IMG/VR virus record: IMGVR_UViG_3300003877_000001
Span: 248,001 to 312,000 of that record
Direction: 5' to 3' (one strand)
DNA length: 64,000 nt
The translations under genes and the position numbers were made by a program. Under the pieces are notes generated by a model. It was not told where the DNA came from. It did not search any database and saw nothing but the letters and a program-made list of their open reading frames with translations. Numbering within the stretch: position 1 is the stretch's first letter; each line of letters starts with the position of its first letter. Positions 2,943 through 32,882 of the stretch are shown piece after piece.

Positions 2943-2947
2943 TTTTT

Positions 2948-7472: not shown

Positions 7473-7724
7473 TTACGACACACTTTCAATCCAAGCTGCT
7501 GCCGTTTGAGTTCCTGTTTCAATTTCTGTAAGTCCCATATCTATTTGTACGTAGCATTCATTTTCAGCTATTAACTCACCAAATTTTTTATCTGAAACTC
7601 TTAGTACTATAATTATACTATCTATTGGTGTTATTCCTAAATTCTTTACGGCATGTGCTACTTGTGCAGCAACCTTACCTTCACTCATTTTTAAGTTCTT
7701 TCTATATATTACTTTTATTCTCAT
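7473..7724 (-). CDS. pth2: Minimal peptidyl-tRNA hydrolase 2
   Basis: RKNLKMSEGKVAAQVAHA, IVLRV and IDMGLTEIETGTQT motifs of the PTH2 family; only 83 aa. Confidence 0.8.
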   Translation of the reverse strand: MRIKVIYRKNLKMSEGKVAAQVAHAVKNLGITPIDSIIIVLRVSDKKFGELIAENECYVQIDMGLTEIETGTQTAAAWIESVS

Positions 7725-13523: not shown

Positions 13524-13537
13524 AGAAACAAAGATAC

Positions 13538-13575
13538 AAAAAAAAATGGTCACCTACAACTAAATGCGGTGACCA
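13538..13575 (-). terminator. Intrinsic terminator
   Basis: tggtcacc...ggtgacca stem followed by a U-tract on the minus strand. Confidence 0.7.
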
Positions 13576-15681: not shown

Positions 15682-15748
15682 AAATTTATGTGTTTTATAT
15701 GTGTTATTTCTTGCAAATATATAATAATTTAATTAATAATGTCAAGTT

Positions 15749-16057
15749 TTATATGAAATAGTTTCCCTCTTTCTTTAAAAAAAGGATGTTCTCTTCTATT
15801 TTAGTGCACTCAGCTATAAATACTACTTCTTCACTTAATGATAAATTAAACCATTCCCCATGTGCACGTAAATGTCCATATCTATTATGCATAGCTGTTT
15901 CTACTTTTCTAGCGAATTCAGATTTGAATTCGTGAATGAGTTGTATTTCTTCACCAGAACCTGTTTGAAGTTGTTTAATACGTTTTTTTGGATTTTTAGA
16001 TATTCCTATTTTATATTTAGATGTTTCTAAATTTTGAATTAAATATACATATGACAT
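15749..16057 (-). CDS. GIY-YIG nuclease, T5orf172/MUG113 type
   Basis: YVYLI...YKIGISKNPKKRIKQLQTG...GEWF. Confidence 0.85.
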   Translation of the reverse strand: MSYVYLIQNLETSKYKIGISKNPKKRIKQLQTGSGEEIQLIHEFKSEFARKVETAMHNRYGHLRAHGEWFNLSLSEEVVFIAECTKIEENILFLKKEGNYFI

Positions 16058-16221
16058 TAATATTGCTTGTATTCAGCATAACCTTCAGATACTAACCATT
16101 CATTAATATTTGCTAGTCTTATTTTTTGTTTACGAAATGCCACACCAAATCCTAAATCCATATCAACAGTAATGGTATCACCATCATAAACTCCCGTTAC
16201 TAATGCTTCGTATGTATACAT
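16057..16221 (-). pseudogene. Internally deleted thermonuclease (SNase-like)
   Basis: MYTYEALVTGVYDGDTITVDMDLGF...IRLA joined directly to NINEWLVSEGYA; the central catalytic part (IDxPE, YGR) is missing. Confidence 0.7.
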
Positions 16222-16223
16222 AA

Positions 16224-16838
16224 TTATAAAATACTCATTACTTTTAATCCAGAATACCCTACACAATATGCATCACTCATATCATATGAACTATCTCTTA
16301 TTGTATTATTTCTAGTATAAAACCATTCAATATGTGGTTCTAATTTAGCAACCTTGCTTCTAATATATTCTTTCTTTTCTTTATTTTTCCAACCTTTAGG
16401 AAATGATAATGTTTCTTTTATTTCACCAGTTCTTTTTTTAGTTGTTTTAATAAATTCAGGACAGAATATTTTTCTTGAGTCATGAACACTTATTTTTTTA
16501 GGTATAACATCAAAAATTTCATATATTTTATATGATGCAATCCCATTAAATCCTAATAGCATTGCAGTTGTATTGATATTTTTTGGGGTGTTTGATAAAG
16601 GTGCTTCAATAAATATATTACTAACAACACATTTATACTCGTTTTCAACTCTATATTTAAATGAAATTAAATAGTCTCTAAATAAATTTGTTTTATAAAC
16701 ATATCTATCTTCAACAGGGATATTTTTATCTATCTTTAATTCAAGATGTTTTAATTCTTCTAATTTTCCATTTTCATCCCATAATGCAACACCAACATTG
16801 GTTGTTGATACATCTAAAGATAGTGAGTAGTTTTTCAT
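16224..16838 (-). CDS. RuvC-like Holliday junction resolvase
   Basis: LSLDVSTTNVGVA, IFIEAP and DMSDAYCVG RNase H-fold catalytic motifs. Confidence 0.8.
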   Translation of the reverse strand: MKNYSLSLDVSTTNVGVALWDENGKLEELKHLELKIDKNIPVEDRYVYKTNLFRDYLISFKYRVENEYKCVVSNIFIEAPLSNTPKNINTTAMLLGFNGIASYKIYEIFDVIPKKISVHDSRKIFCPEFIKTTKKRTGEIKETLSFPKGWKNKEKKEYIRSKVAKLEPHIEWFYTRNNTIRDSSYDMSDAYCVGYSGLKVMSIL

Positions 16839-17035
16839 TAAGCGTTATCTTTAACTTCATCAATTAATTTTTGTAATCTTTTGGGATCATGAAGATATAA
16901 TCTTATTAAATCTTCGATAACACCACCAATCTTCAAACTCTTTCCTTTGCAAAATAGTTTGAATTCGCCATGAACATCACCATTGATGATCACAGATTTA
17001 GATTTTGTATTTGTCATAGTAAGTACATTTTCCAT
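16838..17035 (-). CDS. Small ribbon-helix-helix-like protein
   Basis: KSVIINGDVHGEFKLFC...IGGVIEDLIRLY pattern. Confidence 0.5.
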   Translation of the reverse strand: MENVLTMTNTKSKSVIINGDVHGEFKLFCKGKSLKIGGVIEDLIRLYLHDPKRLQKLIDEVKDNA

Positions 17036-17106
17036 TATTATTATATTTTAGTTATAAATACTGTGTTTTATAAAAAATTATAAAAAAAGGTTGTATTTGT
17101 GAAATT

Positions 17107-17649
17107 TTATTTGTATAAGGATTTGAATATTCTATAATATGTGCTTTCTTCTCTTTCCATTGCATCAATTTCTTGTGGTCTATCATCATGTTCAATGATA
17201 TTATTATTAATAGTATCACCTTTATAAATATAAATCCCACTATAAAAATTAAGTTGTCTTAAATCACCCGATTCAAATTGATCAAGATGTACTAACTCAT
17301 GTCCTAATACAATACCTAATTTATGACCTGCTAAGTATCTTGATATGAAAATAGCATAATGATGTTTAAAAAAGAAATCTTCAACAATAAATGCTCCATA
17401 TTTTTCAGCATATACATCATCCATATATTCAAATTTTATTGAAACACTATCAATACATAGGACATCACTTAACATTAATTTTACTGGTGGTTCTAAATTA
17501 TATTGTGTATTGTTTATAATAGTAATTGATTCAGAAGAATAATCTGTAACATCTTTTTTTATTATTGAATTATTAATTGAAATAAGGAAGCTAATAAGTA
17601 TTATTGCACCTATGGATAATAATGTTTTTATCTTATCTCTTACTTTCAT
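17107..17649 (-). CDS. Membrane-anchored or secreted HExxH metallopeptidase-like protein
   Basis: N-terminal hydrophobic helix; LGHELVHLDQF...PQEIDA. Confidence 0.7.
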   Translation of the reverse strand: MKVRDKIKTLLSIGAIILISFLISINNSIIKKDVTDYSSESITIINNTQYNLEPPVKLMLSDVLCIDSVSIKFEYMDDVYAEKYGAFIVEDFFFKHHYAIFISRYLAGHKLGIVLGHELVHLDQFESGDLRQLNFYSGIYIYKGDTINNNIIEHDDRPQEIDAMEREESTYYRIFKSLYK

Positions 17650-17652
17650 TCA

Positions 17653-18396
17653 TTAGAAATCTAATTGAAATGCAATTGTACGTGCAATTGTGGGATCTTT
17701 TTTTATTGGGTTATTTAATTTACCAATTGCAACTAGGTTATTATTATCATCATATATCCCAACTTCACTAATTGCAACCGATCCCATACCATCCCATGTT
17801 GGGTTTGTTGTTGAGTTAAATTCGTTAAGTGGTAATTGTATTGAGATATCTGTAGTATATACTGTTGCTCTAATATCTGTTCTAATAGTACCAAAGAAAA
17901 AAGCTTCTTCTCCATAACCCATTTCATCTTCAGAAGAAACTGAAGATGGATATGATAAATAATCTAAACTATATTCATTTGGGGATGTTAAATCAGTGAA
18001 ATTAACAATAAAATTAGTATTAAGTAAATTTGATTTTGTAATACTATCACCAATTGTTTGACCAGAAATTTGATTTGTTACATCAACTTTAAACCATCCA
18101 CCAGCATCTGGCGTTATTGTTAATCCAGAATCAGAAATACCATCAACAACTTGTGCTAAAATATTAAGTCTTGTTGCAGTAAAACCAGTACCATTACTAC
18201 TAGTACTATCGGCTAAAAAAAATAATTCTTCTTCATTTAAAAAAAATGTATTTATTGACTTACCTGCAATAATATCTGTTTCCAATTTTTGTATATATGT
18301 ACAATGTGTAGATCCAGATATACCATATACATTAGATGCATTTGCTGGTGCTCCTTCAAATTGATATGTTATAAATACTGTTTTTCCTGTTGCCAT
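17653..18396 (-). CDS. Tail/baseplate structural protein (tail-collar fibre-like C-terminus)
   Basis: ISEVGIYDDNNNLVAIGKLNNPIKK motif; likely start MATGK at 18396, 15 nt after GTATTTATA. Confidence 0.65.
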   Translation of the reverse strand: MATGKTVFITYQFEGAPANASNVYGISGSTHCTYIQKLETDIIAGKSINTFFLNEEELFFLADSTSSNGTGFTATRLNILAQVVDGISDSGLTITPDAGGWFKVDVTNQISGQTIGDSITKSNLLNTNFIVNFTDLTSPNEYSLDYLSYPSSVSSEDEMGYGEEAFFFGTIRTDIRATVYTTDISIQLPLNEFNSTTNPTWDGMGSVAISEVGIYDDNNNLVAIGKLNNPIKKDPTIARTIAFQLDF

Positions 18397-18403
18397 GATT
18401 TTA

Positions 18404-19699
18404 TTATTGATTATAAATACTCCCATCTGTATTTAGTAAAATTATTCTATTTTCATCACTACCATTATAATCAGTAAATTGACCACTAATTAAATATTTA
18501 TTATCGCTTGTTTCAATTAATGATTTAGGTGCATCATTAAACCCACTACCAATGTTGAATGAATTATCAACACTTCCATCTGTGTTTAATCTTATAATTC
18601 TATTTTTTGCATTTCCATTATAATTAGTAAATTGACCACCAATTAAATATTTATTATCGCTTGTTTCAATTAATTCCCAAACAAAAGAGTCAAACCCACT
18701 ACCAATGTTGAATGAATTATCAACACTTCCATCTGTATTTAATCTTACAATTCTATTTTTTGCATTTCCATTATAATCAGTAAATTGACCACCAATTAAA
18801 TATTTATTATCGCTTGTTTCAATTATTGATAAGACAGTACCATCAAACCCACTACCAATATTGAATGAATTATCAACACTTCCATCTGTATTTAATCTTA
18901 CAATTCTATATTTTACATTTCCATTATAATCAGTAAATTGACCACCAATTAAATATTTATTATCGCTTGTTTCAATTAATTTCCAAACAGAAGTATTGAA
19001 CCCACTACCAATGTTGAATGAATTATCAACACTTCCATCTGTGTTTAATCTTATAATTCTATTTTTTACATTTCCATTATAATTAGTAAATTGACCACCA
19101 ATTAAATATTTATTATCGCTTGTTTCAATTATACTTGAAAGACTAAAATCAAACCCACTACCAATGTTGAATGAATTATCAACACTTCCATCTGTGTTTA
19201 ATCTTATAATTCTATTTTTTGCATTTCCATTATAATTTATAAAAACACCACCAATTAAATATTTATTATTGCTTGTTTCAATTAATGATTTAGGTGCATC
19301 ATTAAACCCACTACCAATGTTGAATGAATTATCAACACTTCCATCTGTGTTTAATCTTACAATTCTATTTTTTGCATTTCCATTATAGTAAATGAAAGGA
19401 CCTATTGAAAGATATTTATTATCACTTGTTTCAATAATATTATCAACATCAGTTGAAAAACCACTTCCAAAATTTGGTGGTGGTGTTAGTGTTGTGGTTA
19501 GATTTTTAGTTCCTGTTTTTACCCCACTAGCAGTATCGTATATTGTTACACTATATTCACCAATATTAGATAAATTAGTAAACGAATAAATACCTTCCAT
19601 ATCATGTACTTGATTATCAATAACAGCACCATTCAATGCAAGTTCAACACCAAATGGTGGGTATGAACCTATTATTTTATATGTTATTGTTTGTGCCAT
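18404..19699 (-). CDS. Delta-60 (DUF5122)-type repeat beta-propeller protein, putative virion receptor-binding or decoration protein
   Basis: Seven 51-aa repeats of GSGF...ETSDNKYLIGGQFTxYNG...RIxRLNTDGSVDNSF. Confidence 0.8.
   Translation of the reverse strand: MAQTITYKIIGSYPPFGVELALNGAVIDNQVHDMEGIYSFTNLSNIGEYSVTIYDTASGVKTGTKNLTTTLTPPPNFGSGFSTDVDNIIETSDNKYLSIGPFIYYNGNAKNRIVRLNTDGSVDNSFNIGSGFNDAPKSLIETSNNKYLIGGVFINYNGNAKNRIIRLNTDGSVDNSFNIGSGFDFSLSSIIETSDNKYLIGGQFTNYNGNVKNRIIRLNTDGSVDNSFNIGSGFNTSVWKLIETSDNKYLIGGQFTDYNGNVKYRIVRLNTDGSVDNSFNIGSGFDGTVLSIIETSDNKYLIGGQFTDYNGNAKNRIVRLNTDGSVDNSFNIGSGFDSFVWELIETSDNKYLIGGQFTNYNGNAKNRIIRLNTDGSVDNSFNIGSGFNDAPKSLIETSDNKYLISGQFTDYNGSDENRIILLNTDGSIYNQ
18410..19475 (-). 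repeat. Seven near-identical 153-bp tandem coding repeats
   Basis: cccactacca recurs at 18542, 18695, 18848, 19001, 19154 and 19307 (period 153), with a variant near 19460. Confidence 0.95.
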
Positions 19700-19710
19700 A
19701 ATATTTCATT

Positions 19711-20763
19711 TTAACATGGTGCTGATTGTTGACCTTGATTTATATAAAAACTAAAACTATCAACTTGATTACCATTATAATGTAATAATAAGGTAATTAA
19801 TGCTTTAGATTGACTACTACCATTACCATTAATAAATTTAAATGAATTATTATTAAATAGACATCCATATCCACCATCAAAATTAACAGTATCATTATTA
19901 GATGCTAATGAATTTTGTCCAACACCTAAAATTATATATTCACCATCAACAAAAAACCCACCAGTATTATATTCTACACCAATTTGATTATCTAATGTTG
20001 TTGCAACTTCTATATAAAATTGTGCAGGGAAAGAACCATTTACACCACTATTACCTTTTACATCTACACTAATTTCTACCCCAGAAGGGAATGGGTCGTT
20101 AAAACCACCTGTAAGACCACCAATACTACCAGATTGATTTGTAAAATCCATATTAAATTCAATTGGATCTTGTGTTATTGTTATACTGCCTTGAGCAGTA
20201 CAACCCTCAACAATTCCATTAGGTGTAATACCTTCAATAAGAATACTATATGTTGTTGGTTGAGACCCTACAAGTGCAGGTTTTGTGTAAGAACCATCAC
20301 CAGATCCTATTGTTGGTAATCCAATAGGGTTACCTAATTGATTATATAATGTATATGTAAAATCTTCACCCTGTGTACCAATTACATCGAACACCAAATA
20401 AGGAGGTATATGTGATAAATTAAGCATTTGAAACCCTAAACAAGGATCAATTGTTGTGGTGGTGGTAGTAGTTGTGGTTGTTGTGGTTGTTGTGGGTGCT
20501 AACGTTGTTGTAGTTGTAGTGGTTGTGGGTACTAATGTAGTTGTTGTTGTAATACTATTACCAATAAAACTATTACTATAAAATCCCATTCCTGTATCAT
20601 AAATCTCTAATTCATATATTAATTCATCAGGAACAATAAATGAACCACCATCACCAGAATTAGATAATAAATTACTATCAATAACATCCCCATTGTTATC
20701 TTTTACTAAAACCATAAAAGGAGTAAAAGTACCATCAACAATATATTCTACAAGTTTCCCCAT
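19711..20763 (-). CDS. Putative virion protein with poly-Thr mucin-like linker
   Basis: ITTTTTLVPTTTTTTTTLAPTTTTTTTTTTTTTID tract between beta-rich domains; lies in the tail gene block. Confidence 0.7.
   Translation of the reverse strand: MGKLVEYIVDGTFTPFMVLVKDNNGDVIDSNLLSNSGDGGSFIVPDELIYELEIYDTGMGFYSNSFIGNSITTTTTLVPTTTTTTTTLAPTTTTTTTTTTTTTTIDPCLGFQMLNLSHIPPYLVFDVIGTQGEDFTYTLYNQLGNPIGLPTIGSGDGSYTKPALVGSQPTTYSILIEGITPNGIVEGCTAQGSITITQDPIEFNMDFTNQSGSIGGLTGGFNDPFPSGVEISVDVKGNSGVNGSFPAQFYIEVATTLDNQIGVEYNTGGFFVDGEYIILGVGQNSLASNNDTVNFDGGYGCLFNNNSFKFINGNGSSQSKALITLLLHYNGNQVDSFSFYINQGQQSAPC
20452..20550 (-). repeat. Thr/Pro-rich low-complexity coding tract
   Basis: Run of ACN codons with mixed third positions. 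Confidence 0.9.
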
Positions 20764-20774
20764 TTAAATTTAAA

Positions 20775-22106
20775 TTATGGTAATATCATTATTTCAAGAT
20801 CACTATCAGGACAAGATGATGCATTGAACCCTGTATTAATTGGTGGTAGTGTCCAACTTCTATTTGATTTATATGACATTGCCTGAAGTAATTCTTGATC
20901 TTCAATTATGAATACTTTTAAATCATTAAATACTTTACCAACAACATTATCATATTGATCAACTAAATTAGCATATGATGTATTTAATTCAGGTAACTGA
21001 CCTAGACTAGTAAAATCACCACTAAGTGTTATCCCAATCGTACCACTAGTGTTTTTATGCCACATAATTGTTGGTAGATCAATAGTTGGTGTTGTTGTAT
21101 TTGTTAAAACAAACCCTTCACCATAATTATTTGAGGGTGAATTATTACTATAATGTATTAATCCAATATTTTTAACTTTTGGGCTTATTTTTTCTAGATA
21201 TTGTATTAATCCACCAAAAGCAACGCTTGGATTCGCACTAATATTTCTCATTGGTGGTATAATATTACCACCAGTACCAATAACATCTTCAGTATATACA
21301 ATTGACATATTCCAAACTGGTACATCAATTGTTGGTATATCATAATTTTCAATGAATGCAAGCATTGATTCAGATACAAAATCAGTTACAAAGGGCGATC
21401 CATAATAGTTTTGAATTGAGTCACCTGAAAAATGTCTACCATTATTATTTGGATATATTAATGCACCACTATCAAAACCAACGATTCCATTAAAATCAGG
21501 AATATTACGATCAACCGTAACTTGTAAATTATTATTGGTTAATGAACCTGTGATTGCTATTATTTTATACCATAAATATGGTATTGCTTTATCAACATCA
21601 AACCCAACAGTATGACCAACAACCTGATTTGCCCATCTAACAACCACATAATCACCAATTTCTGGTTCTGTTAAATTTGATGATGTTGCTGCCAATTTTA
21701 AAATATTCCCACCATCAACATTAGCACCAACAATTTTACAATTAGGTTGTTTTACATGAACAACATCATTAAAAATAGTTTTTGTTCCACCAGTAACATT
21801 AAACATACCCTTTTGCTGTATTGTATTTGTAATAATAGAAGTATTAGATACTACCGTTGGTAGATTAACTAAAGAATCTCCACTCACTACTTGAGTTATA
21901 AAACTAACAATTTCAGGATTTTTATCAACAGGTTTAAATATTGCAACATTAAAAGGGTCTAATGATACTTCATTATTATATTCATAATCTATTTCACTAT
22001 CACCAATAGCAAATTTTTTAAATCTAAGTTCACCTCTAGATAATAGTTCTCTACCTTTATCTGTTAATTTTATTTGTAATACTGTTTGATCTACTGAAAA
22101 TGCCAT
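20775..22106 (-). CDS. Tail/baseplate structural protein
   Basis: N-terminal LTDKGRELLSRG...FAIGDSEIDY motif resembling tail-collar/baseplate proteins; GTATTTATA upstream. Confidence 0.6.
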   Translation of the reverse strand: MAFSVDQTVLQIKLTDKGRELLSRGELRFKKFAIGDSEIDYEYNNEVSLDPFNVAIFKPVDKNPEIVSFITQVVSGDSLVNLPTVVSNTSIITNTIQQKGMFNVTGGTKTIFNDVVHVKQPNCKIVGANVDGGNILKLAATSSNLTEPEIGDYVVVRWANQVVGHTVGFDVDKAIPYLWYKIIAITGSLTNNNLQVTVDRNIPDFNGIVGFDSGALIYPNNNGRHFSGDSIQNYYGSPFVTDFVSESMLAFIENYDIPTIDVPVWNMSIVYTEDVIGTGGNIIPPMRNISANPSVAFGGLIQYLEKISPKVKNIGLIHYSNNSPSNNYGEGFVLTNTTTPTIDLPTIMWHKNTSGTIGITLSGDFTSLGQLPELNTSYANLVDQYDNVVGKVFNDLKVFIIEDQELLQAMSYKSNRSWTLPPINTGFNASSCPDSDLEIMILP

Positions 22107-22131
22107 TTAAATAATCTTTAATATAAATACA

Positions 22132-23169
22132 TTATAATTTTTTTATTAATTCATTGAAATTCCTTTTAGTATTTTGAATTTCTTCAACATATTTTATTGA
22201 ACCACGTTCCTTATTAACATATGAAAAATCTTCATTAAATGGATGATTTTTAACATATTGTGTTTTATTAAATAAATATTTTTGATCAAACACACCTGCA
22301 TTATGAAATATGTTTGTTTTATAATATTCACTTAAATTCCCCGTTGCCCATGAAAAATCCATATCATTATGTATTACTGTTATATGTCCTAATTTCCATG
22401 CATTCCATATTACTGCCCACATATCCGCTGTCCATGATTGTATTGGGTGTTTTGGATTAAATTTATGTATAGTACTTGTCATTAATTCATATAGGTTCTC
22501 AGAATCACTTTCAACATTTTCCCAAAATTCAGCATCAGCATTTTTCATTATATATTGTGCACCACCAGCATTACCATCCATATTTACAACTAATTCTGGA
22601 TCAATATTCACAGTTTTACACATTAAATTAAATAATTCAGTACTTTTACTTTTAATATATGTTGAATTTAAATATGATTTCGTATTACTAACAAACCAAT
22701 CAGGAGTTAAATAGATATAATCATCATATGTTGGTTTTTCTCTAAATAGTACATCTGGGTCTAAATAATAAAACATTCTAGACTCGTCTGGAAATTTAAT
22801 AAAATGTTTTTTTAATATATGTGGTCTAATAGATGAGGAATACCTAGATTTTTCTCTTTCGTCTTTATATGTGAAAATTTTAACACCAGTTTCTTTTTGA
22901 ATGTAATTTAACTTTGGACTTCTTCTATTTTTTATAGAAATCACATAACTTAAATCATCTAAAATTCCTAGTCTTTTAAAATTATTAATTTGAACCAACA
23001 TTTGCCATCTAAAATATGGGGTATCTGAAGTTGCCACAACATATTTCATATTACATATTTTATTTGTTGAATAATTATATTGTGTTAGTGTTGATTTAAC
23101 ATCAACACTATATTCTTCAATATATTCAGGTGGTATTGTTGTTAGTTTTTTAGTTAAAAAAAATGACAT
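22132..23169 (-). CDS. GT-A glycosyltransferase resembling plant HPAT/SGT1 (GT95/GT96) protein O-glycosyltransferases
   Basis: YFRWQ, IRPHIL, YLDPDVLF (DxD), GGAQYI and WTADMWA motifs in the family's order; possible true start MKYVVAT at 23049. Confidence 0.65.
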   Translation of the reverse strand: MSFFLTKKLTTIPPEYIEEYSVDVKSTLTQYNYSTNKICNMKYVVATSDTPYFRWQMLVQINNFKRLGILDDLSYVISIKNRRSPKLNYIQKETGVKIFTYKDEREKSRYSSSIRPHILKKHFIKFPDESRMFYYLDPDVLFREKPTYDDYIYLTPDWFVSNTKSYLNSTYIKSKSTELFNLMCKTVNIDPELVVNMDGNAGGAQYIMKNADAEFWENVESDSENLYELMTSTIHKFNPKHPIQSWTADMWAVIWNAWKLGHITVIHNDMDFSWATGNLSEYYKTNIFHNAGVFDQKYLFNKTQYVKNHPFNEDFSYVNKERGSIKYVEEIQNTKRNFNELIKKL

Positions 23170-23172
23170 AAT

Positions 23173-26100
23173 TTATATGAAAGTAATGTTATTATTTATA
23201 CTGTATGGTATTTCTTCTCTTTCTATTAACACACCACCATCAAATGTTTTATATAACCATTGTTTTTGTGATGAAAGATTATATGTTGTTGCCCACCAAG
23301 TATTTTCATCAAGAATATATGGTCTACCTGCTTGATTTATTTCAGGGTCAATACCTATTGGTAATTCATGTATTGTCCAAGTATCACCACCATCATTTGT
23401 TATTGCAACAGATGCAGGGTCGTTAGTATATGAGGATATTATACCAAGATCTGCGTTTGCAAAATATATTGATCTTGTAAAAAATGGTACAGTTACATCA
23501 AACCAAGTAGCACCACCATCTGTTGATTTTTTTAAATCAACTTGTGTTGAATATATTGTATTACTATCTCCAATAGATATTGCTGGTGATGTTACTTGAG
23601 TTGTTGGTGCATATAATGATGTTCTATCAACCCATGTAGCACCACCATCATTTGATATAAACATCCCTAATGGTTGATTAAACTGTGCAACAACTAAATC
23701 ACCTAATGCATCAACAGCAATTACACCACCAAACCCAGTAAAAGGTATATCTGTTGTTGTTCTATTAAATGTAGCACCACCATCTGTTGATTTATATAAA
23801 AACCAAACATGAGAACTACTAATATTACCAACATATATGTTATTAACATCTTTAGTCGACATAACACCAAAACTTTCATTAAATGATAATGCAGTACCAA
23901 ATGTTGGTTCTGTCCATGTTGCACCAGCATCTGTTGATCTTCTTACATGTGAATCAACACCATTTATTAATCCATCTGAAGTTCTTACAGCAACAATTGT
24001 ATTTGTATTTACAGCAATCACACCATAACTACCAATATTTGGGTCATCTAATGTCCATGTTTCACCACCATCATTACTAAAAGTATTTGAAGTATCACCA
24101 TTAATAAAACCAAATGTTGTTGTAGGTGCTGCCGTAGTTGTTGTGGTTGTGGTTGTTGTAGGTGCTATCGTAGTAGTTGTTGGTGCTGTGGTAGTCGTAG
24201 TTGTAGTTGTTGTAATTTGAACACATGCAGGTGTGTCAAATGTTGATAATAACAATAAATTATCTCTTTCTAATTGTGTTGACACACCAATGTAAATTAA
24301 AAAATCACTAACTCTTGTTGCATATGCAGAATCCGATAACCCACCTAAAGAAGTAAGTGATATTGCAGAATATGAAGAAAACGTATCATTAATATAATAT
24401 ATATTAGTTGTTACTATTGTTGAATTTCCACTTGGTTGTAATTCATTACACTTTAATTCGTGTCTTCTTGCATTAGTTGATGTTATTGTTGATACACAAA
24501 TTAAATTAATTGACCATTCATATGTTGTTTGTGGTTGTACAACAATAAATGTACTTCCATCATCCCCTAAATATTCTAAGTTTGAATCAAAATTTACACC
24601 TCTAGGATATCTAAATTTTTGTCTAGTAAATGCAGTATTTCTAATCAATATACCACCCTTACCTAAAATTATTGTTGCTGGTAATAATTCATTTACAAAT
24701 CTATTAAAGAATGCATTATATTGATTTATAAATGAATATAAATTACCGAAATTATAACCATTACTTTGTAATGGGTTACCATTGGGAAGAAAACTTCTTT
24801 TTAAATATTCATCATAAATATGTTGTACTGTTGGATAATATCCACCAGTATTATCAGTAATCGTTTTTCTTCTAGGTACATTAATTAATCTTCTAGTAAT
24901 TAATTCAAGATATTCTAAGAAACTCATATCACCAATGTCAGGGAATGTTGAGTCTACAGGTAATAATGGTGGTACATAACTACCATCATCAATAATATAG
25001 TATGCACCAATAATAAAACCTAAATTTATTGATGATGGTAAGTATACTTGTTTTTTATTTAGTGGATTTAATGTAAAATCTGTTCCATTTTGCAACGTAA
25101 TACCATTAACAGTTATTTTAATTGAGTCAAGATTAAATGCCGTAAAATCTAAAACATAGATATATTTATTAATACCTGCATTATAATAGAATTTAGATGA
25201 ACTAAATGAATCCACTCTAAACGCTTCTGATCTTTTTTCAGCATTAGAAGGTAAACTACCATCTTTAATATACCATGTTCTAATAACTGGATTTGTTAAT
25301 AAATATGCTTTTAAGTCGTTATTTTGTATAATTAATTTAGTGCGATCTAGAGTATCAATCATAAAATCACCACTAAATAATGTTGTACCTTTAGTCATTG
25401 TTATACCGTTAATAACTAATTGAACATCACCTTTAGGTTCTTCAGGAAGTTGAAGAACAGCACCAGCAGATAATACCGTAGGTGCTTGAACCAAATATTC
25501 TACTTGTGTATATCCAGTATTCCCAAGTCTATTATATAAATATGTTACAGTTATCACATCTTGACCTGTTGTTGCACTAACGGCAGTTGCAGGATTAATA
25601 GTAACAGTACCAAGGTTATTATCAAAATTATAATCTGTTGTTGGTGTTAATGTTACCCCATTATAATTCATTTGAATGGCACTCCCACTCATAGGTATTT
25701 CAGGTAAATTAAATGTTGTAGGATCATCTACTTCCAATTCCATATTAATATAGATATATGGACTTGTTGTACCTGTTGAAGTAATTGGTGAATCAATAAA
25801 TTTATTATAACAAAATACGTCATATTCAATTCCACGTGCAGTATCTAATGTTACATCAACTTCCTTAGTATTTATAATTAATTTACTATCTTCCTGATAA
25901 TAATTAGGTGTTGATGGATGAATCCTTTCAATAAATCCACCTTCTACCCATGATTTTTTATTATCAATAGTTCTATTTACATCAAATCCCATGTTTCTAA
26001 AATTATCGATATATGCTTGTCCATTATCACTATTACCAGATATTTGAAAATAGAAATCATCAGTTTCTACTGGTGCAATAGGATATCCATCCCCATCAAA

Positions 26101-27594
26101 TGGAAATGATGCTGAAGGTATGTCTTCCAATGACAATTCTACATCATTAGGATTTATTTTACCATCAACAGTATAAACATATTCAGTAATATTAATAAAT
26201 GGTTCAGGAATACCAATTAATTGAAACATCGATTTTATTGCATGTCTAGTACCTTTAGACTTCCAATAATAATTAGTATTAATTAAAATTCTTCTCCAAA
26301 GTTCAATATCGATTTCAGCAGGAAGTAAATCGTTTTCACCAAATTCTTTTTCAGATGAAAAGAATGCTTCGGTTACATCTTGTTCTGTTACTAAATCAAA
26401 AACATCCCAACCCATTGTTTTAGCTAAGTTTCTAACTAAAATATCTGGAATATTATTCTTTTTATCATATGTTGTTTTATTGATATTAACAATAGCATCA
26501 ATAAATAATCTTAATTCATCAAATTCACGACCATATATTCTTAATAACTTAGTCATTTTACCTTCATCAGTAAGATCATAAAGTTTTAAAGAAGCTGGTG
26601 TTAAAAATCTTGCAATTAAATCGGTTTTTACTTTATCATATGAAGTACCAATACTTAATATTGTTGTTAAAAAGGTTTCAAATAGTGAACCTTGAATATT
26701 TGGATTATAATTATCTGTTGTATTCCATAATATATTTACATCACCATAAAAAACACCACCAGTATCTAAAATAGTTACTTTTTTTAATTTTATTTGAAAC
26801 CCACTATAATCTGCTAATCTATTAGATATGAAATATGTTTCCAATTGATTTGAGTTCTTTAAAAATTTATTATATTCTAAAACATTTGGTTTCATATGAA
26901 AATTAACTGAACCAGTTGTTGCACCTGATAATGTTGGAAATGGATTACCTTGTACTGTTAATTCAATCCAAGGTGTATTTACTGTGTCACCAGTAAAACC
27001 AAGAACATTATGTGTATTATTTTCAGGATCAGTACTTTGCCAAATAACAAAATTTTCATAACTTAAATTAAGATTTCTTAATTTATTATCTATTGGATTT
27101 GATAAGTTCCCATTATCAAATATTATTGTAAATGTGTTTGAAACTACGGATGATAACATTCTAAAATTTGACGTATCAGTAAATGGATCATATGTAAAAT
27201 TATAGAACGTATCAGTACCATTACCTTGTGAATCAAGATATATACTTGCAGGATAATTTTTTATAATTTCATCTATGGTTACTCTAAAAAGTTCAGCAGC
27301 AGAACCGAATCTAACATATGATTTAATATCCGATTTATCGAAATTTAATGTTACTGTATTTGTAAAATCAAATATATCTTGTGATTGATTATTATCAATA
27401 CCTAATGTTTCTAATGTAATTGGATTTGAAAACGAACTTAAAGTATTTGAATAATCTCTAGTCTTTTTGCCTGTAAAATTTGACTTAACAACAAAATCAC
27501 CCAATGAGAACACCGTTTCCGATGCTACATTAGTAAAATTTCCACCAATTAGGTCTTGATTCTGACCTTTATTTATAACCTTTTTTCTAGCCAC
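23173..27594 (-). CDS. Large baseplate/tail protein with beta-rich repeats, poly-Thr linker and C-terminal BNR/Asp-box propeller
   Basis: YWKSKGTRHAI baseplate-wedge-like motif; repeated (I/V)NGxTL...DF modules; Thr tract; about seven SxDGGxTW Asp-boxes; GTG start. Confidence 0.75.
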   Translation of the reverse strand: MARKKVINKGQNQDLIGGNFTNVASETVFSLGDFVVKSNFTGKKTRDYSNTLSSFSNPITLETLGIDNNQSQDIFDFTNTVTLNFDKSDIKSYVRFGSAAELFRVTIDEIIKNYPASIYLDSQGNGTDTFYNFTYDPFTDTSNFRMLSSVVSNTFTIIFDNGNLSNPIDNKLRNLNLSYENFVIWQSTDPENNTHNVLGFTGDTVNTPWIELTVQGNPFPTLSGATTGSVNFHMKPNVLEYNKFLKNSNQLETYFISNRLADYSGFQIKLKKVTILDTGGVFYGDVNILWNTTDNYNPNIQGSLFETFLTTILSIGTSYDKVKTDLIARFLTPASLKLYDLTDEGKMTKLLRIYGREFDELRLFIDAIVNINKTTYDKKNNIPDILVRNLAKTMGWDVFDLVTEQDVTEAFFSSEKEFGENDLLPAEIDIELWRRILINTNYYWKSKGTRHAIKSMFQLIGIPEPFINITEYVYTVDGKINPNDVELSLEDIPSASFPFDGDGYPIAPVETDDFYFQISGNSDNGQAYIDNFRNMGFDVNRTIDNKKSWVEGGFIERIHPSTPNYYQEDSKLIINTKEVDVTLDTARGIEYDVFCYNKFIDSPITSTGTTSPYIYINMELEVDDPTTFNLPEIPMSGSAIQMNYNGVTLTPTTDYNFDNNLGTVTINPATAVSATTGQDVITVTYLYNRLGNTGYTQVEYLVQAPTVLSAGAVLQLPEEPKGDVQLVINGITMTKGTTLFSGDFMIDTLDRTKLIIQNNDLKAYLLTNPVIRTWYIKDGSLPSNAEKRSEAFRVDSFSSSKFYYNAGINKYIYVLDFTAFNLDSIKITVNGITLQNGTDFTLNPLNKKQVYLPSSINLGFIIGAYYIIDDGSYVPPLLPVDSTFPDIGDMSFLEYLELITRRLINVPRRKTITDNTGGYYPTVQHIYDEYLKRSFLPNGNPLQSNGYNFGNLYSFINQYNAFFNRFVNELLPATIILGKGGILIRNTAFTRQKFRYPRGVNFDSNLEYLGDDGSTFIVVQPQTTYEWSINLICVSTITSTNARRHELKCNELQPSGNSTIVTTNIYYINDTFSSYSAISLTSLGGLSDSAYATRVSDFLIYIGVSTQLERDNLLLLSTFDTPACVQITTTTTTTTTAPTTTTIAPTTTTTTTTTAAPTTTFGFINGDTSNTFSNDGGETWTLDDPNIGSYGVIAVNTNTIVAVRTSDGLINGVDSHVRRSTDAGATWTEPTFGTALSFNESFGVMSTKDVNNIYVGNISSSHVWFLYKSTDGGATFNRTTTDIPFTGFGGVIAVDALGDLVVAQFNQPLGMFISNDGGATWVDRTSLYAPTTQVTSPAISIGDSNTIYSTQVDLKKSTDGGATWFDVTVPFFTRSIYFANADLGIISSYTNDPASVAITNDGGDTWTIHELPIGIDPEINQAGRPYILDENTWWATTYNLSSQKQWLYKTFDGGVLIEREEIPYSINNNITFI
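24115..24213 (-). repeat. Thr/Ala/Pro-rich low-complexity coding tract
   Basis: Encodes TTTTTTTTTAPTTTTIAPTTTTTTTTTAAPTTT. Confidence 0.9.
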
Positions 27595-27691
27595 TGATAA
27601 TTTCTTTCATATAAATACAATTAAAGAAAAAACCCCAACATTTTTGTTAGGAATTTTTTTAATTATAAATACTATAAAATTTTATAAAAAT

Positions 27692-27889
27692 TTATATTAT
27701 AAGTAATTCTTTCTTTAAAACATTATTAATATCTTCATTATATTTAATATGTAATAACTTAATATTATTATTTTTAGCAAATTCACCATGTGCAGGACAT
27801 ATAATTTTAACTTTAGTTTTTGATGTATTATATTCAACAAATGAATAATAGTATTTATTTCCATGAATTTTTATTGATCTTTCAACATG
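27692..27889 (-). pseudogene. Collapsed homing endonuclease remnant, paralog of 37908..38852
   Basis: Start-less frame VERSIKIHGNKYYYSFVEYNTSKTKVKIICPAHGEF-AKNNNIKLLHIKYNEDINNVLKKELLII*: first repeat fused to the terminal segment. Confidence 0.7.
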
Positions 27890-27918
27890 TAAATATATAC
27901 TAAGAAAATTTATAAAAC

Positions 27919-28821
27919 CTATCCAACTGAATCTATTATGATATTTATGTCTTGACTATTATCAATCACATTTCTTTTTTCTTTCACTTCAAATAATGCA
28001 TCATCAGTAACATCATCATCAATTTCAAATAAATTAAATTGTTTAAGAATATTTCTATCAGTATCATAATTAGTAAGAATACCACGTTTAACATCTTTGA
28101 TTTGTTCACCAGCTACAACATCAACAACAGTATCTATTGTATTTTCAACAAATTCTACTTCAACAGTGAGGGGGTTTACATTTGTATTATACATTAAGAT
28201 TGATTGATTAGGTTTTCCTATAAAGGGATTAACATTTGGTTTAACGTTTGAAGCCGAAGATGGTGTTAACTGTAAAAATATTAATGAACCAGAATCATCA
28301 AAACGATAACGTACTGCTGTTTGAGATGTGTTACCAATATTTTCTGTTACAGGAATTGCTCTATTAGATGTTACAACGTATCTTACAGTATTTCGTAGCT
28401 TAGTACCATCATCATTAATATATTCGATTCTATACCCATCTAAAGCACCGTTAGTGGTTAATTCAATAGGTAGTTGATTGGAGTCTAACACAATACCCTT
28501 TACTGTCGGTAAAGCCGATAGAACCCCACAATCTACAATTACAGTTCTTAATTGTTTTGGTCTAATAAATAAAGTATAAAATCCTAATTGATTAAATATT
28601 GTTGCAGGTAAAATTAGATTATATAATCCACCAAGCAAATTATCTTCACCACTAACTTGTTCGTCTGTTGGTGTAAGTATTGGTGCTAAGACTGAAGGTG
28701 CATCTAATCTAAATGTTTCATTTGAGTTATCTTCTCTTGATGGACTAAATGTATAGAATATATCCAAATCATTTACCGATATATCTGCTGCTCTTAAATT
28801 TCCATATGTTCCTATACTCAC
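27919..28821 (-). CDS. Putative baseplate/virion structural protein
   Basis: 300-aa beta-rich ORF (GTG start) within the baseplate block. Confidence 0.6.
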   Translation of the reverse strand: MSIGTYGNLRAADISVNDLDIFYTFSPSREDNSNETFRLDAPSVLAPILTPTDEQVSGEDNLLGGLYNLILPATIFNQLGFYTLFIRPKQLRTVIVDCGVLSALPTVKGIVLDSNQLPIELTTNGALDGYRIEYINDDGTKLRNTVRYVVTSNRAIPVTENIGNTSQTAVRYRFDDSGSLIFLQLTPSSASNVKPNVNPFIGKPNQSILMYNTNVNPLTVEVEFVENTIDTVVDVVAGEQIKDVKRGILTNYDTDRNILKQFNLFEIDDDVTDDALFEVKEKRNVIDNSQDINIIIDSVG

Positions 28822-29036
28822 TTTTTATTGTTTTACTTCTTTTAATTTATTATTTCTTTTATCAACAATCATAATTTTAACTAGTCTCACATTCTCATTA
28901 ACCCACTCATTTTTTTTCATATTGTTTTGATAAATACTCAATATATATATTTTCACATATGTACCATTACATTTTTCTATTCCTAGAATTACTTAATTTT
29001 CTTTAATTTCAATATCACTAAAAATAGGTTTCTTCA

Positions 29037-29480
29037 TTATGTGTTGTTTAATATATTAAATTTAGCACCACCAGCATATTTTTCCAATTCAGAAATATTT
29101 CTAATATCTTGTAATCTATAGACATTTTGAAAAACTGGTAATGATTGTCTTATTATAAATACATTATTATCAATTTCTGGTTTATCAATAATATTTTGTT
29201 TTACTTCATCCTTAATAATTTTATAATCACTAAAATTATTCGGATCATCATATCCTAATGAATTAAACGAAAATGTTGTTGTTTTATTTATTACATCATC
29301 AACATAAGTAATTCCACCAATATAATATGTCCAAGTGGTGGGTGTTTGTGTTAATAATCCGTTAACACCATCATTTATATTTGGGTCAGTAGAAGTAAAA
29401 TATAGTTCACTAAGCGTACCTGTAACTGTGAACTTTCTTAATTCAGATAATCGAGATGAAGATGTTCCTGTAACTATCAT
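29037..29480 (-). CDS. Putative virion structural protein
   Basis: 147-aa ORF in the baseplate block. Confidence 0.6.
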   Translation of the reverse strand: MIVTGTSSSRLSELRKFTVTGTLSELYFTSTDPNINDGVNGLLTQTPTTWTYYIGGITYVDDVINKTTTFSFNSLGYDDPNNFSDYKIIKDEVKQNIIDKPEIDNNVFIIRQSLPVFQNVYRLQDIRNISELEKYAGGAKFNILNNT

Positions 29481-30373
29481 TATATTTTATTTAAATATTC
29501 AGATTCAAATTCTTTTATTATATGTGAATATTGTGGAAAAAATTTATTAATTTTAAATTTAATTTTTTCAATAACAATATCTTTATATTTAGTATAACTC
29601 CATAAATGAGCATAACCGATTTCATCGGCAATTTGAAACCAATTATAATTTCTTTTTTCAATCTCTTTAATGGGTATTATTTCAAACGGTTCTACATTAT
29701 TTTCTTTTAAAATGTAATGTAAGAGTGATTGTTCCGCAATTAAAAACATACCTTCATATTTTTTTCGATTACTTTTAAAATCACCATTAGTTGAAATATC
29801 AACTAAAATTTCTTTTACTTTATTTGCATATATGTTTTTTAATTTCATATCACTAAATCCAACAACCCCACAATTATATGCTGCTAAATTATATTTATTC
29901 CAATCAATTCCATGATTATTCATTTTATCAAATGGATTTTTTGATCTCGAATAAATATCATGAAAATGATTACCAATTGTTTTATCATTTTCAAGTGATT
30001 GAACAGCCACTTTATACCTTCCACTAGTAATATTATCACCAATAATGTCTCGAAATAAAAGTACATCTCCATCGATATGTATATATGGTTCTGTCATTAA
30101 TATATGTGTTTTAATTTTTCCCCAAATCCAAAACTTACTACTAACCCCATCCGAATCAAAATCAACAATATGTATTTTATCATACGGTATCATTGAATAT
30201 AGATTATATGCATGTTTATCACAATATAATTCAATAACATATCCTAATTTTTTTATTAAAATTACACTCATTAAATAAGTGTAAAAGTTTTTATTTAAAT
30301 ATTTTATATCATAATCGTTATCAAAATTATCTTTTATTGATGGTGTTGACCATATTGAATGTATATATTTCAT
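29480..30373 (-). CDS. DUF6734-like putative nucleotide-sugar transferase (GT-A like)
   Basis: IHSIWS, IELYCD, WIWGKI, PYIHIDGDVLLF (DxD), YNCGVVG, IAEQ, YAHLW. Confidence 0.65.
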   Translation of the reverse strand: MKYIHSIWSTPSIKDNFDNDYDIKYLNKNFYTYLMSVILIKKLGYVIELYCDKHAYNLYSMIPYDKIHIVDFDSDGVSSKFWIWGKIKTHILMTEPYIHIDGDVLLFRDIIGDNITSGRYKVAVQSLENDKTIGNHFHDIYSRSKNPFDKMNNHGIDWNKYNLAAYNCGVVGFSDMKLKNIYANKVKEILVDISTNGDFKSNRKKYEGMFLIAEQSLLHYILKENNVEPFEIIPIKEIEKRNYNWFQIADEIGYAHLWSYTKYKDIVIEKIKFKINKFFPQYSHIIKEFESEYLNKI

Positions 30374-30627: not shown

Positions 30628-32481
30628 TTAAACACCAAGATTAACCTTTTTACGTAAAATTACTTTAATATCTTTTTCGGGATATTTTATTTCAAACATA
30701 CTATCTTCTGCGGAATATATTGTTTGATTTACAACTTCAATTTCACCAGTTATTGGATTACTAATTGTTTGTTCAATTGGATTTACAGAATATTGACCAC
30801 CAATCTTATTAAATATTTTAACTGAAAGAATATTTACCACATTAGTAACATTATTTATAACCTCAACTAATGGTGTTATAAATATATCTTCATTCATTTG
30901 ATGATTATTAATATCAAAGTAATCTCTTACTGAAGTAATTACTGAATTAGCTATTTGATTATCATTATTTTCATTTACAAACAATTCAATAATAAACCCT
31001 AAATTGAAAATTCTACCGTCACGAACTTCAATATAGTCATTAACCATTCTAAATTCAGTAAGATATTCGGTCATATTAGATTTTAATAAACTATTAGAGG
31101 TGTTATTTAATTTACCATCAGAACCAACACCAAGAATTGGTATTATAATTTTATTATTTTCTCTAAATGCATTTGCTCTAAAAGGTGAACCAAATTTACC
31201 ATCCATTTCAAATACTTGAAATAAATAATCATTTATTTGTACATTTCTTCTTTGTGATGAAAAATTATATTTAGTTAAATTTCTTATTTGTTCAATAGAT
31301 AAACCATCATTTCCACCAATTGCTGGAATTGGGTTGTTTACGGTTAAACTTCTTTTTACTTGTTGATTAAAGTCTTGACGAGAACCGTTTACATTAATTG
31401 TTACAGTACCTAATGATGTTAATGTATTTGCACCTAAATTTGATGCACTACCACCACCTGTTTTATATCTAACAAATAACGTGAAACCTGCTTTTAATTT
31501 CTCACCTAATGCGGTATTTTCAAGATAGTTATTTAAAAATTGTTGATTTGTAACACCTGCCTTTAAAAATCCTTCTTTAAAAGCATCTAATTCACCATTA
31601 CCCCCACCAAAAGTTAATTCACAAAAACCATCTGCTGTAAATTCTTTTATAAATTTTTGGGTTATGTCTATCCAAATACCTGCTTTTATTCCAGTATTTC
31701 CAATTGTTAAATTATTTGTACCACCATTAGGGTCTTCTACAAAAACTCTTTGTTGTGCTAACCAATCAACCTCTTCATATCTATTATCTTGATTATTAAA
31801 TTCTGCTTCGTTGGGGTTTCCAGAGAAATTAGTACCAGCTAATAATATTACATCAGACACTACTAATACATCCGGATCTGGAAGTCTTAATATATAAAAA
31901 GGAACTACTTCATTAGTAGTAATTGATTTTCTTAATATACTAGATGCACCATTAATTACAACCTCTCTTTTGGTTATTTGATAATTACGAATAATACCAT
32001 TAGAATCTAATTGTGGTATTATTGATCTATTTGGTGCTCCTAATGCTGAAAATGGGGATGCAAAATCAATTACTTCATCATTCTCAAATGTTTTACCACC
32101 ACCAACTACTTGTGATTGTGGTGATATTGTTGGATAATAATCAGCATCTGGTTGGTCGCCTTTAACTGGTACAGTAACAATATAATCAACAACAGTAACT
32201 GAAGGTCTTTTAGCTGGAATATTAAACCCCATATTTTTAGCAATTCCAAGTACTGATTCGGTTTGTTGTGCATATTCTAATTGAGTTTCTTGGAATGCAC
32301 GATCTGTGTTGGTTGCTAAATTATTTGCAACACCTGCATTAAGATCAATAAGCATTGATCCCACATTAGAATCAGTAAAATCAGTAAGAACTTCAGGATA
32401 GTATTCCTTAACTAATGTTATTAATTCTTCTTTTATTTCACTAAATGTTCTTTTTTGAAAATTTACTCTATTGTCTCCCAT
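30628..32481 (-). CDS. Baseplate wedge subunit, T4 gp6-like
   Basis: FSEIKEEL...DFTDSNVGSMLID, LEYAQ..SV..IAKNMGF, YKTGGGSASN, GGNDGLSIEQIR, SSQRRNVQINDY. Confidence 0.85.
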   Translation of the reverse strand: MGDNRVNFQKRTFSEIKEELITLVKEYYPEVLTDFTDSNVGSMLIDLNAGVANNLATNTDRAFQETQLEYAQQTESVLGIAKNMGFNIPAKRPSVTVVDYIVTVPVKGDQPDADYYPTISPQSQVVGGGKTFENDEVIDFASPFSALGAPNRSIIPQLDSNGIIRNYQITKREVVINGASSILRKSITTNEVVPFYILRLPDPDVLVVSDVILLAGTNFSGNPNEAEFNNQDNRYEEVDWLAQQRVFVEDPNGGTNNLTIGNTGIKAGIWIDITQKFIKEFTADGFCELTFGGGNGELDAFKEGFLKAGVTNQQFLNNYLENTALGEKLKAGFTLFVRYKTGGGSASNLGANTLTSLGTVTINVNGSRQDFNQQVKRSLTVNNPIPAIGGNDGLSIEQIRNLTKYNFSSQRRNVQINDYLFQVFEMDGKFGSPFRANAFRENNKIIIPILGVGSDGKLNNTSNSLLKSNMTEYLTEFRMVNDYIEVRDGRIFNLGFIIELFVNENNDNQIANSVITSVRDYFDINNHQMNEDIFITPLVEVINNVTNVVNILSVKIFNKIGGQYSVNPIEQTISNPITGEIEVVNQTIYSAEDSMFEIKYPEKDIKVILRKKVNLGV

Positions 32482-32483: not shown

Positions 32484-32882
32484 TTATATTGTTAACGTTA
32501 TACTACCTGTTTCACTAAATACATCTTCTGAATATTTAAACTCTACAAGAATATTAATTTGATTATCACCAATATCATCACCAATATCATCAGTATCACT
32601 AAAAAATGTTACTTTTGATATTGTAAGTTGAGGTATAAACAATTTTACTGTTTCTCTTATTTCTTCTTCGATATCACTTTGTGTCACACCATCTTTAGGT
32701 TCAAAAAGATATTTTCTAATATTAACCCCATACTCAGGTTCATAATATCTCTCACCCTTTTCAGTTAATAATAATAATATTAAATTTGAAGTTAGTGCTT
32801 CTTTTGTAATACTATTCATTTTAAATAATCTGTTAGTTACGTTATCATCCTCTAATGGAAATTTAATATTTATTGTATTCAT
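32484..32882 (-). CDS. Baseplate wedge protein, T4 gp25-like
   Basis: NLILLLLTEKGERYYEPEYGVNIRKYLFEP motif. Confidence 0.9.
   Translation of the reverse strand: MNTINIKFPLEDDNVTNRLFKMNSITKEALTSNLILLLLTEKGERYYEPEYGVNIRKYLFEPKDGVTQSDIEEEIRETVKLFIPQLTISKVTFFSDTDDIGDDIGDNQINILVEFKYSEDVFSETGSITLTI

Follow-up and report, generated by a model that had tools for sequence, protein, structure and literature searches.

In a 64,000-nucleotide stretch of viral DNA (hereafter the window; bases 248,001–312,000 of the 325,854-bp IMG/VR virus record IMGVR_UViG_3300003877_000001), we found a gene for a predicted soluble GT-A transferase of 345 amino acids (aa; positions 22132–23169 of the window, minus strand) that is flanked by the genes of the only two proteins with long threonine (Thr) tracts in the whole genome. 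The reading that we favor, with a probability of roughly 0.6, is that this transferase is a phage-encoded cytoplasmic enzyme that initiates O-glycosylation of Thr tracts in virion proteins and modifies the tracts encoded next to it. This reading rests on comparative genomics and predicted structure. The record is complete according to CheckV and represents a jumbo phage; the window has a guanine-plus-cytosine content of ~27%, and almost all of its genes lie on the minus strand.

Transferase Family and Predicted Fold

The transferase belongs to PHROG 4417, a family of unknown function (E = 5.1e-65; residues 41–335 aligned with positions 1–292 of the 293-position profile). It has no match in Pfam or NCBIfam, and a profile search against PDB sequences returned only spurious matches to TAL-effector repeats. 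Homologues are numerous (554 in a 90% cluster database; 914 clusters at 50% identity with E ≤ 1e-3), and all of them are named "hypothetical protein" or carry uninformative labels, with no functional name among them. The motifs on which the original prediction was built (YFRWQ, RPHIL, LDPD, GGAQY, and WTADMW) are all present in the translation. In an alignment of 44 sequences that are 43–83% identical to the query, these motifs fall on invariant or near-invariant columns (W55, D137, D139, G202–Q205, W246, T247, M250, and W251). D137, D139, and 37 further columns are invariant, as are the AGGAQ and WTADMW motifs and H289, and the DxD motif (D137-P-D139) directly follows a predicted central strand (residues 132–136). 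A catalytically inactive GT-A fold co-opted for a role in structure or assembly, perhaps the binding of Thr tracts, would fit a gene that is embedded among structural and chaperone genes and lacks a match to the sequence models of active families. We regard such a role as highly improbable. The invariance of DxD, AGGAQ, WTADMW, and H289 at this level of divergence is typical of a maintained active site, and the fusions of family members to GT2 and methyltransferase domains described below suggest a role in an enzymatic pathway.

An AlphaFold2 model of the transferase, built with 44 homologues, has a mean predicted local distance difference test score of 89.9; residues 1–40 form a disordered extension, yet this extension is conserved among close relatives. 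A Foldseek search of the PDB with the model gave 171 matches with E ≤ 1e-3. All 50 of the 50 matches listed are GT-A enzymes, and the neighbors include WbbM, UGGT, glycogenin, LgtC, and GT6. With VIA-align, Z scores of 13–15 over about 207–250 residues were obtained, reaching ~15 for glycogenin, LgtC, UGGT, and GlyE, several of which are protein-glycosylating enzymes. Judged from this model, the protein is very probably a GT-A glycosyltransferase.

The original prediction had likened the protein to hydroxyproline O-arabinosyltransferase (HPAT; GT95) and peptidyl-serine galactosyltransferase (SGT1; GT96), which are initiating O-glycosyltransferases acting on repetitive hydroxy-amino-acid peptides, namely, extensins (PMC8012813). 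At the level of predicted structure the resemblance held, and SGT1 and the HPATs are the best annotated neighbors. The top eight matches among the Swiss-Prot models of AlphaFold DB are Arabidopsis SGT1, HPAT1–3, RDN1/2, PLENTY, and NOD3, with E-values from 2.9e-11 (SGT1) to 1.1e-8 and template modeling (TM) scores of 0.53–0.63 (0.58–0.63 for HPAT1–3, RDN, and PLENTY); GT8 galactinol synthases rank below them at a TM score of ~0.46. In the ESM Atlas, HPAT clusters reach TM scores of 0.70–0.72, compared with 0.56–0.58 for GT8, and among the AlphaFold DB clusters HPAT-like domain proteins come next after the family's own homologues. All of these comparisons with SGT1 and HPAT are between predicted structures.

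At the level of sequence models the resemblance did not hold. The Pfam HPAT model PF23452 has no match in the genome even at E ≤ 10, and equally none in 14 control genomes; in an hmmscan search it matched 0 of the 44 family members. Likewise, the Glyco_transf_8 model (PF01501) matched neither the transferase nor any of the 44 relatives. Because both models fail to match, only structure links the protein to peptide O-glycosyltransferases. About 10% of the members of two neighboring Atlas clusters carry PF23452. Sequence identity to the GT95 and GT96 enzymes is 11–15%, which, together with the PF23452 mismatch, sets the phage protein apart from them.

The localization of the enzyme also appears to differ. 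HPATs are type II membrane proteins of the Golgi (PMC8012813), whereas the phage transferase is predicted to be soluble and to have no membrane anchor. No transmembrane segment was found in it (the maximum Kyte–Doolittle hydropathy is 0.79 over 19 residues, and the N-terminal extension is hydrophilic), which points to a cytoplasmic enzyme. With the retaining enzymes of GT8 and GT24 (glycogenin, LgtC, UGGT, and GlyE), the transferase shares the common fold and the DxD motif. Several of these enzymes act on proteins or glycoproteins, and the substrate of GlyE is a Ser-rich repeat adhesin, whose glycosylation takes place in the cytoplasm. Nevertheless, they are only 7–13% identical to the transferase, which has no Glyco_transf_8 match and is structurally farther from them than from the HPAT and SGT1 models.

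Threonine Tracts Flanking the Transferase Gene

Within a module for the baseplate and tail fibres, four open reading frames (ORFs) lie on the minus strand in the order that the original prediction had given, encoding a 1473-aa protein (23173–27594), the transferase, a 443-aa structural-module protein without a tract (20775–22106), and a 350-aa protein (19711–20763). The gp25-like gene (32484–32882, minus strand) and the gp6-like baseplate wedge gene (30628–32481, minus strand) just upstream identify the module as a baseplate module. The earlier label of "baseplate protein" for the 1473-aa product agrees with its position near these two genes; a weak immunoglobulin-like match is its sole family match, and nothing beyond position speaks for the label.

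The 1473-aa protein carries ITTTTTTTTTAPTTTTIAPTTTTTTTTTAAPTTT at residues ~1127–1160, a 34-residue Thr/Ala/Pro tract (24115–24216, minus strand) that is one candidate acceptor. The other is a 34-residue tract in the 350-aa protein, TTTTTLVPTTTTTTTTLAPTTTTTTTTTTTTTT, at residues ~72–105 (20449–20550, minus strand), which is preceded by a 70-aa N-terminal module and followed by a 240-aa C-terminal domain. The scan that found long Thr tracts only in these two proteins covered ~600 ORFs of at least 60 aa, of which 327 are at least 100 aa long. The distances between the tracts and the transferase gene, 942 and 1,579 bp, have a probability of ~9e-5 under uniform placement. The arrangement of tracts and transferase gene is thereby confirmed as real and highly non-random.

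The DNA of the tracts agrees with the proposal that selection acts on the protein. Thr codons are mixed (28 ACA, 11 ACT, 9 ACC, and 4 ACG), and the share of the rare codons ACC and ACG is raised (13 of 52, or 25%, compared with 10.7% genome-wide), which would lower the repetitiveness of the tracts at the DNA level. In addition, Tandem Repeats Finder gave a period-3 matching of just 66–71%. Because the codons are mixed and period-3 identity is poor, an origin as slippage-type microsatellites is rejected, and the tracts are taken to be maintained at the protein level rather than as pure slippage repeats.

Both tract-bearing proteins appear to be modular. Residues 1–1035 of the 1473-aa protein are orthologous (43–58% identity) to proteins of ~1200–1330 aa that precede the transferase gene in relatives and bear a tract of their own at the equivalent point. 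Residues 1041–1125 form a small module that matches the N-termini of small poly-Thr proteins. Beyond the tract, the C-terminal end is a BNR/Asp-box beta-propeller domain (23173–24114, minus strand) with seven SxDxGxTW-like Asp-box motifs. The Pfam models BNR and BNR_2 match it just below their cut-offs, and in the PDB it matches dispase autolysis-inducing protein (E = 2.6e-7) and, more weakly, Ycf48 and VPS10. This BNR domain also matches the post-tract domains of other proteins. Similarly, the 443-aa protein corresponds to the N-terminal half of an 877-aa protein in a relative, which continues with a tract of 30 Thr residues and a BNR-like domain. The tracts thus mark the points at which a conserved part anchored in the virion meets exchangeable distal domains. 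The idea that Thr linkers display terminal domains fits these module junctions in this lineage. It does not fit the tracts that form C-terminal tails of capsid and tail-tube proteins in other phages. Because the tracts of many phages are such tails and not linkers, the proposed role as a stiff, protease-resistant stalk cannot be a general one.

Co-occurrence of the Transferase and Threonine Tracts

The pairing recurs in related viral loci, as the original prediction would lead one to expect. A scan of IMG/VR with the transferase family alignment gave 569 confirmed loci, of which the best 80 were examined, up to 10 kb from the transferase gene, for tracts in which at least 7 of 10 residues are Thr. 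A poly-Thr protein is present at 71 of these 80 loci, and the pairing was seen in 29 of the 30 clusters into which the transferases fall at 60% identity, although many of the loci are mutually related and the counts do not represent independent events. The nearest tract lies on the transferase's strand in 70 of the 71 cases, and its distance from the gene has a median of 342 nt and is at most 1.5 kb in 55 of 71. In the whole records of nine jumbo relatives (~3.1 Mb), searched for seven consecutive ACN codons, runs of at least seven Thr codons occur in six genomes, and, with one exception, no site is more than ~6 kb from the transferase gene. The exception corresponds to an internal background of ~1 site in 3 Mb of DNA outside the vicinity of the gene. 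In metagenomic siphophages of ~40 kb, the Thr tails are found on major head proteins of PHROG 10 and major tail proteins of PHROG 88.

Among named phages, a tblastn search recovered the family at ~32% identity in 77 phage records, with hosts in Enterococcus, Lactobacillus, Staphylococcus, Lactococcus, Clostridium, Chryseobacterium, and Arcanobacterium. The 38.8-kb genome of Enterococcus phage phiFL1A has a homologue, gp51, whose gene lies after that of the major tail protein and before those of the tail chaperones. The major tail protein gp50, encoded immediately before gp51, ends in a C-terminal Thr tail (...TTTTSTTTTTTSSTTTTTTTQASSK), and so does the major head protein gp45 (...TTTTTKPTTTTTKPTTTTTTTQG). 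Across the whole genome, Thr runs are limited to these two tails, and the annotation has no glycosyltransferase-like gene besides gp51. In Enterococcus phage VPE25, a Thr tail (...TTTDTTTTTTTTTTAGK) was seen on the major tail protein only, and in Chryseobacterium phage MA9V-3, Thr/Ser tracts (TTTTSSTTTTTT) occur in the two genes upstream of the transferase gene. The family-model match in VPE25 (LT615366.1:76909–77787) holds one TAA; the annotated coding sequence spans 76915–77787, and the match probably just overruns a stop codon.

A phyletic comparison of orthologous tail proteins gave the same picture. Ten phages share a major tail protein of the phiFL1A type (40–100% identity), and whole-genome searches found the transferase in two of them, phiFL1A and Lacticaseibacillus phage R3.3. 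Both have Thr-run tails on the tail protein, which in R3.3 ends in ...VTTTTTTSHA. The whole-genome searches found no transferase in the other eight, namely, a group that includes Streptococcus phages phiGBSVK-C, Javan505, and Javan570, Lactobacillus phages phiJL-1, ATCC8014, and phiLpTT2, and Bacillus phage SPP1. Seven of these eight are annotated, and no Thr run was found at the C-termini of their tail proteins; the unannotated phiLpTT2 is outside this count. In all eight, the chaperone genes lie directly 3' of the tail gene, so the transferase gene resembles an insertion that accompanies the Thr tails. Thus, the two computational checks suggested with the original prediction, of fold and of co-occurrence, both gave positive results, the co-occurrence being very strong, and neither of the computational outcomes named as refuting it (no likeness to GT-A enzymes, or a distribution independent of Thr-tract proteins) was seen.

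Several observations weigh against the reading that the transferase modifies the tracts. In addition to the relatedness of the loci and the failure of the Pfam HPAT and GT8 models noted above, no tract was found at 9 of the 80 transferase loci (several of these are incomplete contigs), and one of the nine, a complete genome of 357 kb, has no Thr run at all. A literature search gave no paper on glycosylation by any member of the transferase family. The converse test points in the same direction. Of 80 viral loci chosen for ten consecutive ACN codons only (mean length 8.6 kb, with the tract off-centre and giant-virus GVMAG contigs included), 74 have no such transferase within the sampled stretch. 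The gene is present at six, each time immediately downstream of the tract. Since only these 6 of the 80 hold one, poly-Thr tracts do not need this transferase, and a rule that every poly-Thr phage protein has the transferase nearby fails. Location in a shared late structural operon would also be expected of a virion-associated enzyme with some other acceptor.

In another explanation, the acceptor is not a protein. The transferase could modify a host envelope polysaccharide, teichoic acid, or phage DNA, while the tracts are flexible linkers or tails that stay unmodified, or are modified by host enzymes, and the pairing would then arise because both reside in variable regions of the structural module. 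The most familiar activities of phage glycosyltransferases are indeed the glucosylation of DNA and serotype conversion (PMC12619734), and most poly-Thr viral loci lack this transferase nearby. Nevertheless, we consider this explanation unlikely. The adjacency is much tighter than membership in the same module, as the tract is often in the next gene, and the gain and loss of Thr tails among orthologous tail proteins follow the transferase. Moreover, the gene sits between major tail and chaperone genes rather than in a lysogeny or DNA-metabolism module, no GtrAB-type membrane partner was found nearby, and the transferase itself has no transmembrane segment.

Accessory Enzymes and Peptide-Tailoring Relatives

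The transferase may be part of a longer pathway. Members of the family are fused to GT2, GT25-like, and Methyltransf_24 domains, and one contig encodes a 306-aa transferase in tandem with a transferase–GT2 fusion, with poly-Thr proteins on both sides. Within the baseplate module of the window, a 297-aa DUF6734 protein (29480–30373, minus strand) has a GT8-like GT-A predicted fold, and DUF6734 is probably a glycosyltransferase family for this reason; the protein is a putative accessory enzyme, and its gene is present at just 5 of the 80 related loci. On contig L005, on which the transferase gene is identical to that of the window, the DUF6734 frame is split into two overlapping ORFs (2869–3713). 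A third putative glycosyltransferase near the module is a 458-aa protein (35122–36498, minus strand) that matches PHROG 7162 ("glycosyltransferase") and, weakly, a GT1-type model. Outside the window, a sugar-biosynthesis island of ~15 kb (positions 15,000–30,000 of the genome) encodes a PfkB kinase, UDP-GlcNAc 2-epimerase, GDP-mannose 4,6-dehydratase, a sulfotransferase-like protein, a GIY-YIG protein, two DegT-type aminotransferase pieces (one fused to GNAT), two methyltransferases, and four GT2-type genes. This gene set is compatible with the synthesis of an aminated or acetylated deoxyhexose.

The presence of several other glycosyltransferases in the window and the genome raises the question of whether the transferase elongates or branches a glycan whose first sugar on Thr comes from a host enzyme or another phage enzyme. 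Most of the solved structures nearest to it (GT8, GT24, and the GT8 enzyme GlyE) belong to enzymes that transfer sugar to sugar, which would suit such a role. However, phiFL1A has both Thr tails with gp51 as its sole annotated glycosyltransferase-like gene, and it is this transferase gene, not the accessory ones, that tracks the tracts. Furthermore, the nearest annotated structural relatives, SGT1 and HPAT, place the first sugar on a peptide (PMC8012813). An elongating or branching role is thus improbable, and initiation on the tracts is the role that we favor.

Two further observations offer leads that the broader enzyme group acts on peptides. A 756-aa cellular family member (Logan contig L217:8001–10271; contigs L217–L220) is encoded inside a class I lanthipeptide cluster, next to a 65-aa precursor that has a GG leader and a core rich in Ser, Thr, and Cys; LanB, a C39-ABC exporter, and two LanC genes are also present. 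From this gene content, the lanthipeptide of the cluster may be glycosylated. In addition, one Atlas cluster joins PqqD with an HPAT domain.

Proposed Mechanism and Comparison with Known Systems

Taken together, the gene order and the predicted fold suggest the following scheme. The soluble, metal-dependent (DxD) transferase would use a nucleotide sugar made by the host or the phage and would act in the cytoplasm late in infection. It would place the first sugar on Thr hydroxyls of the long tracts in the virion proteins encoded alongside. In this jumbo phage, the tracts would be linkers from baseplate-anchored modules to exchangeable distal domains, such as the BNR beta-propeller, whereas in small siphophages they would be C-terminal tails of the major head and major tail proteins. 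The glycan may then be extended by DUF6734, PHROG 7162, or enzymes of the GT2-rich island, or by the fused GT2, GT25-like, or methyltransferase domains. The result would be a mucin-like, extended segment that is shielded from protease or antibody. The analysis itself shows the predicted fold, the conservation of motifs of catalytic type, and a coupling to virion proteins with poly-Thr that holds in gene neighborhoods and across phages; from these we infer the acceptor role of the tracts, the initiating step, the identity of the sugar, and the mucin-like shielding.

Thr would be the acceptor in phages, unlike the hydroxyproline or Ser used by GT95 and GT96. Hydroxyproline was judged an unlikely acceptor, because a search with PF13640, the Pfam 2-oxoglutarate oxygenase family used to seek a prolyl hydroxylase, found no such oxygenase in the genome and because the Thr tail of the phiFL1A tail protein contains no proline.

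O-glycosylated segments rich in Thr and Pro are familiar from the Pro/Thr linkers of secreted glycoside hydrolases and from mucin domains, where they lie between folded modules, and their glycosylation is thought to extend them and to protect them from proteases. Those linkers are modified in the secretory pathway by other enzyme families, whereas the phage proteins assemble in the bacterial cytoplasm.

Phage-encoded virion glycosylation is established in the mycobacteriophages Che8 (gp108–110), Corndog (gp38), and Myrna (Freeman et al., 2023, as cited in PMC12363180 and PMC12619734). As in the Che8-type systems, virion proteins would be modified in the cytoplasm by phage enzymes, and the putative acceptors in small phages are the C-termini of major capsid and tail-tube subunits. 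The domain types of the Che8 gp108–110 cassette (GT2, GT25, and Methyltransf_24) also recur, here as fusions to the transferase family. Nevertheless, the transferase itself is unrelated to the GT2- and GT25-type enzymes gp109 and gp110. The probabilities that hhalign gave against them were 0.2–0.3%, and homology to the mycobacteriophage glycosylation enzymes was rejected on the basis of these values below 1%. The systems also differ in their acceptors and gene order. The capsid and tail C-termini of Che8 end in ...NKTGS and ...YSDGS, without poly-Thr, and the Che8 transferase genes are located at the far end of the genome, away from the target genes. A literature search found no description of the PHROG 4417 family or of poly-Thr glycosylation in phages and no paper linking GT95- or GT96-like enzymes to phages.

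We give even odds to a broader proposal, in which tailed phages have a widespread and so far undescribed system of mucin-like O-glycosylation and PHROG 4417 carries out its initiating step. A genetically encoded poly-Thr "glyco-tag" on proteins of the capsid, tail tube, baseplate, or fibres would then receive its sugars in the bacterial cytoplasm from this one dedicated GT-A enzyme. The system would span phages of Enterococcus, Lactobacillus, Staphylococcus, Clostridium, and Bacteroidota, as well as Listeria prophages and aquatic jumbo phages. The enzyme would be a prokaryotic or viral sister of GT95 and GT96, with relatives recruited to the tailoring of ribosomally synthesized and post-translationally modified peptides (lanthipeptides).

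Other Features of the Window

Downstream of the 350-aa protein gene, the window encodes a 431-aa DUF5122 beta-propeller protein (18404–19699, minus strand), the homologues of which bear N-terminal poly-Thr tracts in relatives. Its gene contains a tandem repeat of 153 bp (2.9 copies, 87% matching; 19000–19439), so the propeller blades are recent DNA-level duplications. A 257-aa tail-fibre/collar-like protein (17653–18426, minus strand) marks the end of the syntenic block. A megablast search of the 9-kb region against a phage collection gave zero matches.

Genes for DNA metabolism begin below ~16.8 kb of the window. An SbcC-like protein (1101 aa; 7724–11029) and an SbcD/Mre11-like exonuclease (504 aa; 14167–15681) are encoded a few kb apart, with a primase-like gene (12495–13553) in between. 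At 42256–44040, a 594-aa protein combines the core of a CCA-adding-type tRNA nucleotidyltransferase with a weak N-terminal ParB-like match.

Implications

If the favored reading is true, a function would be assigned to a large family that has so far had no functional annotation. Phage virion glycosylation would reach beyond mycobacteriophages to many lineages, including the model Enterococcus phages VPE25 and phiFL1. Relative to the mycobacteriophage systems that are already known, the new elements would be the enzyme family and the type of acceptor, for which there would be a simple rule, namely, a Thr run beside the transferase gene. Such a system of one soluble enzyme and a short genetic tag is also a possible tool for cytoplasmic O-glycosylation in bacteria. 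The structural resemblance raises the evolutionary question of how these phage and bacterial enzymes are related to the extensin glycosyltransferases of plants and algae. For the phages themselves, a glycan coat could affect antibody recognition, clearance, stability, and adhesion.

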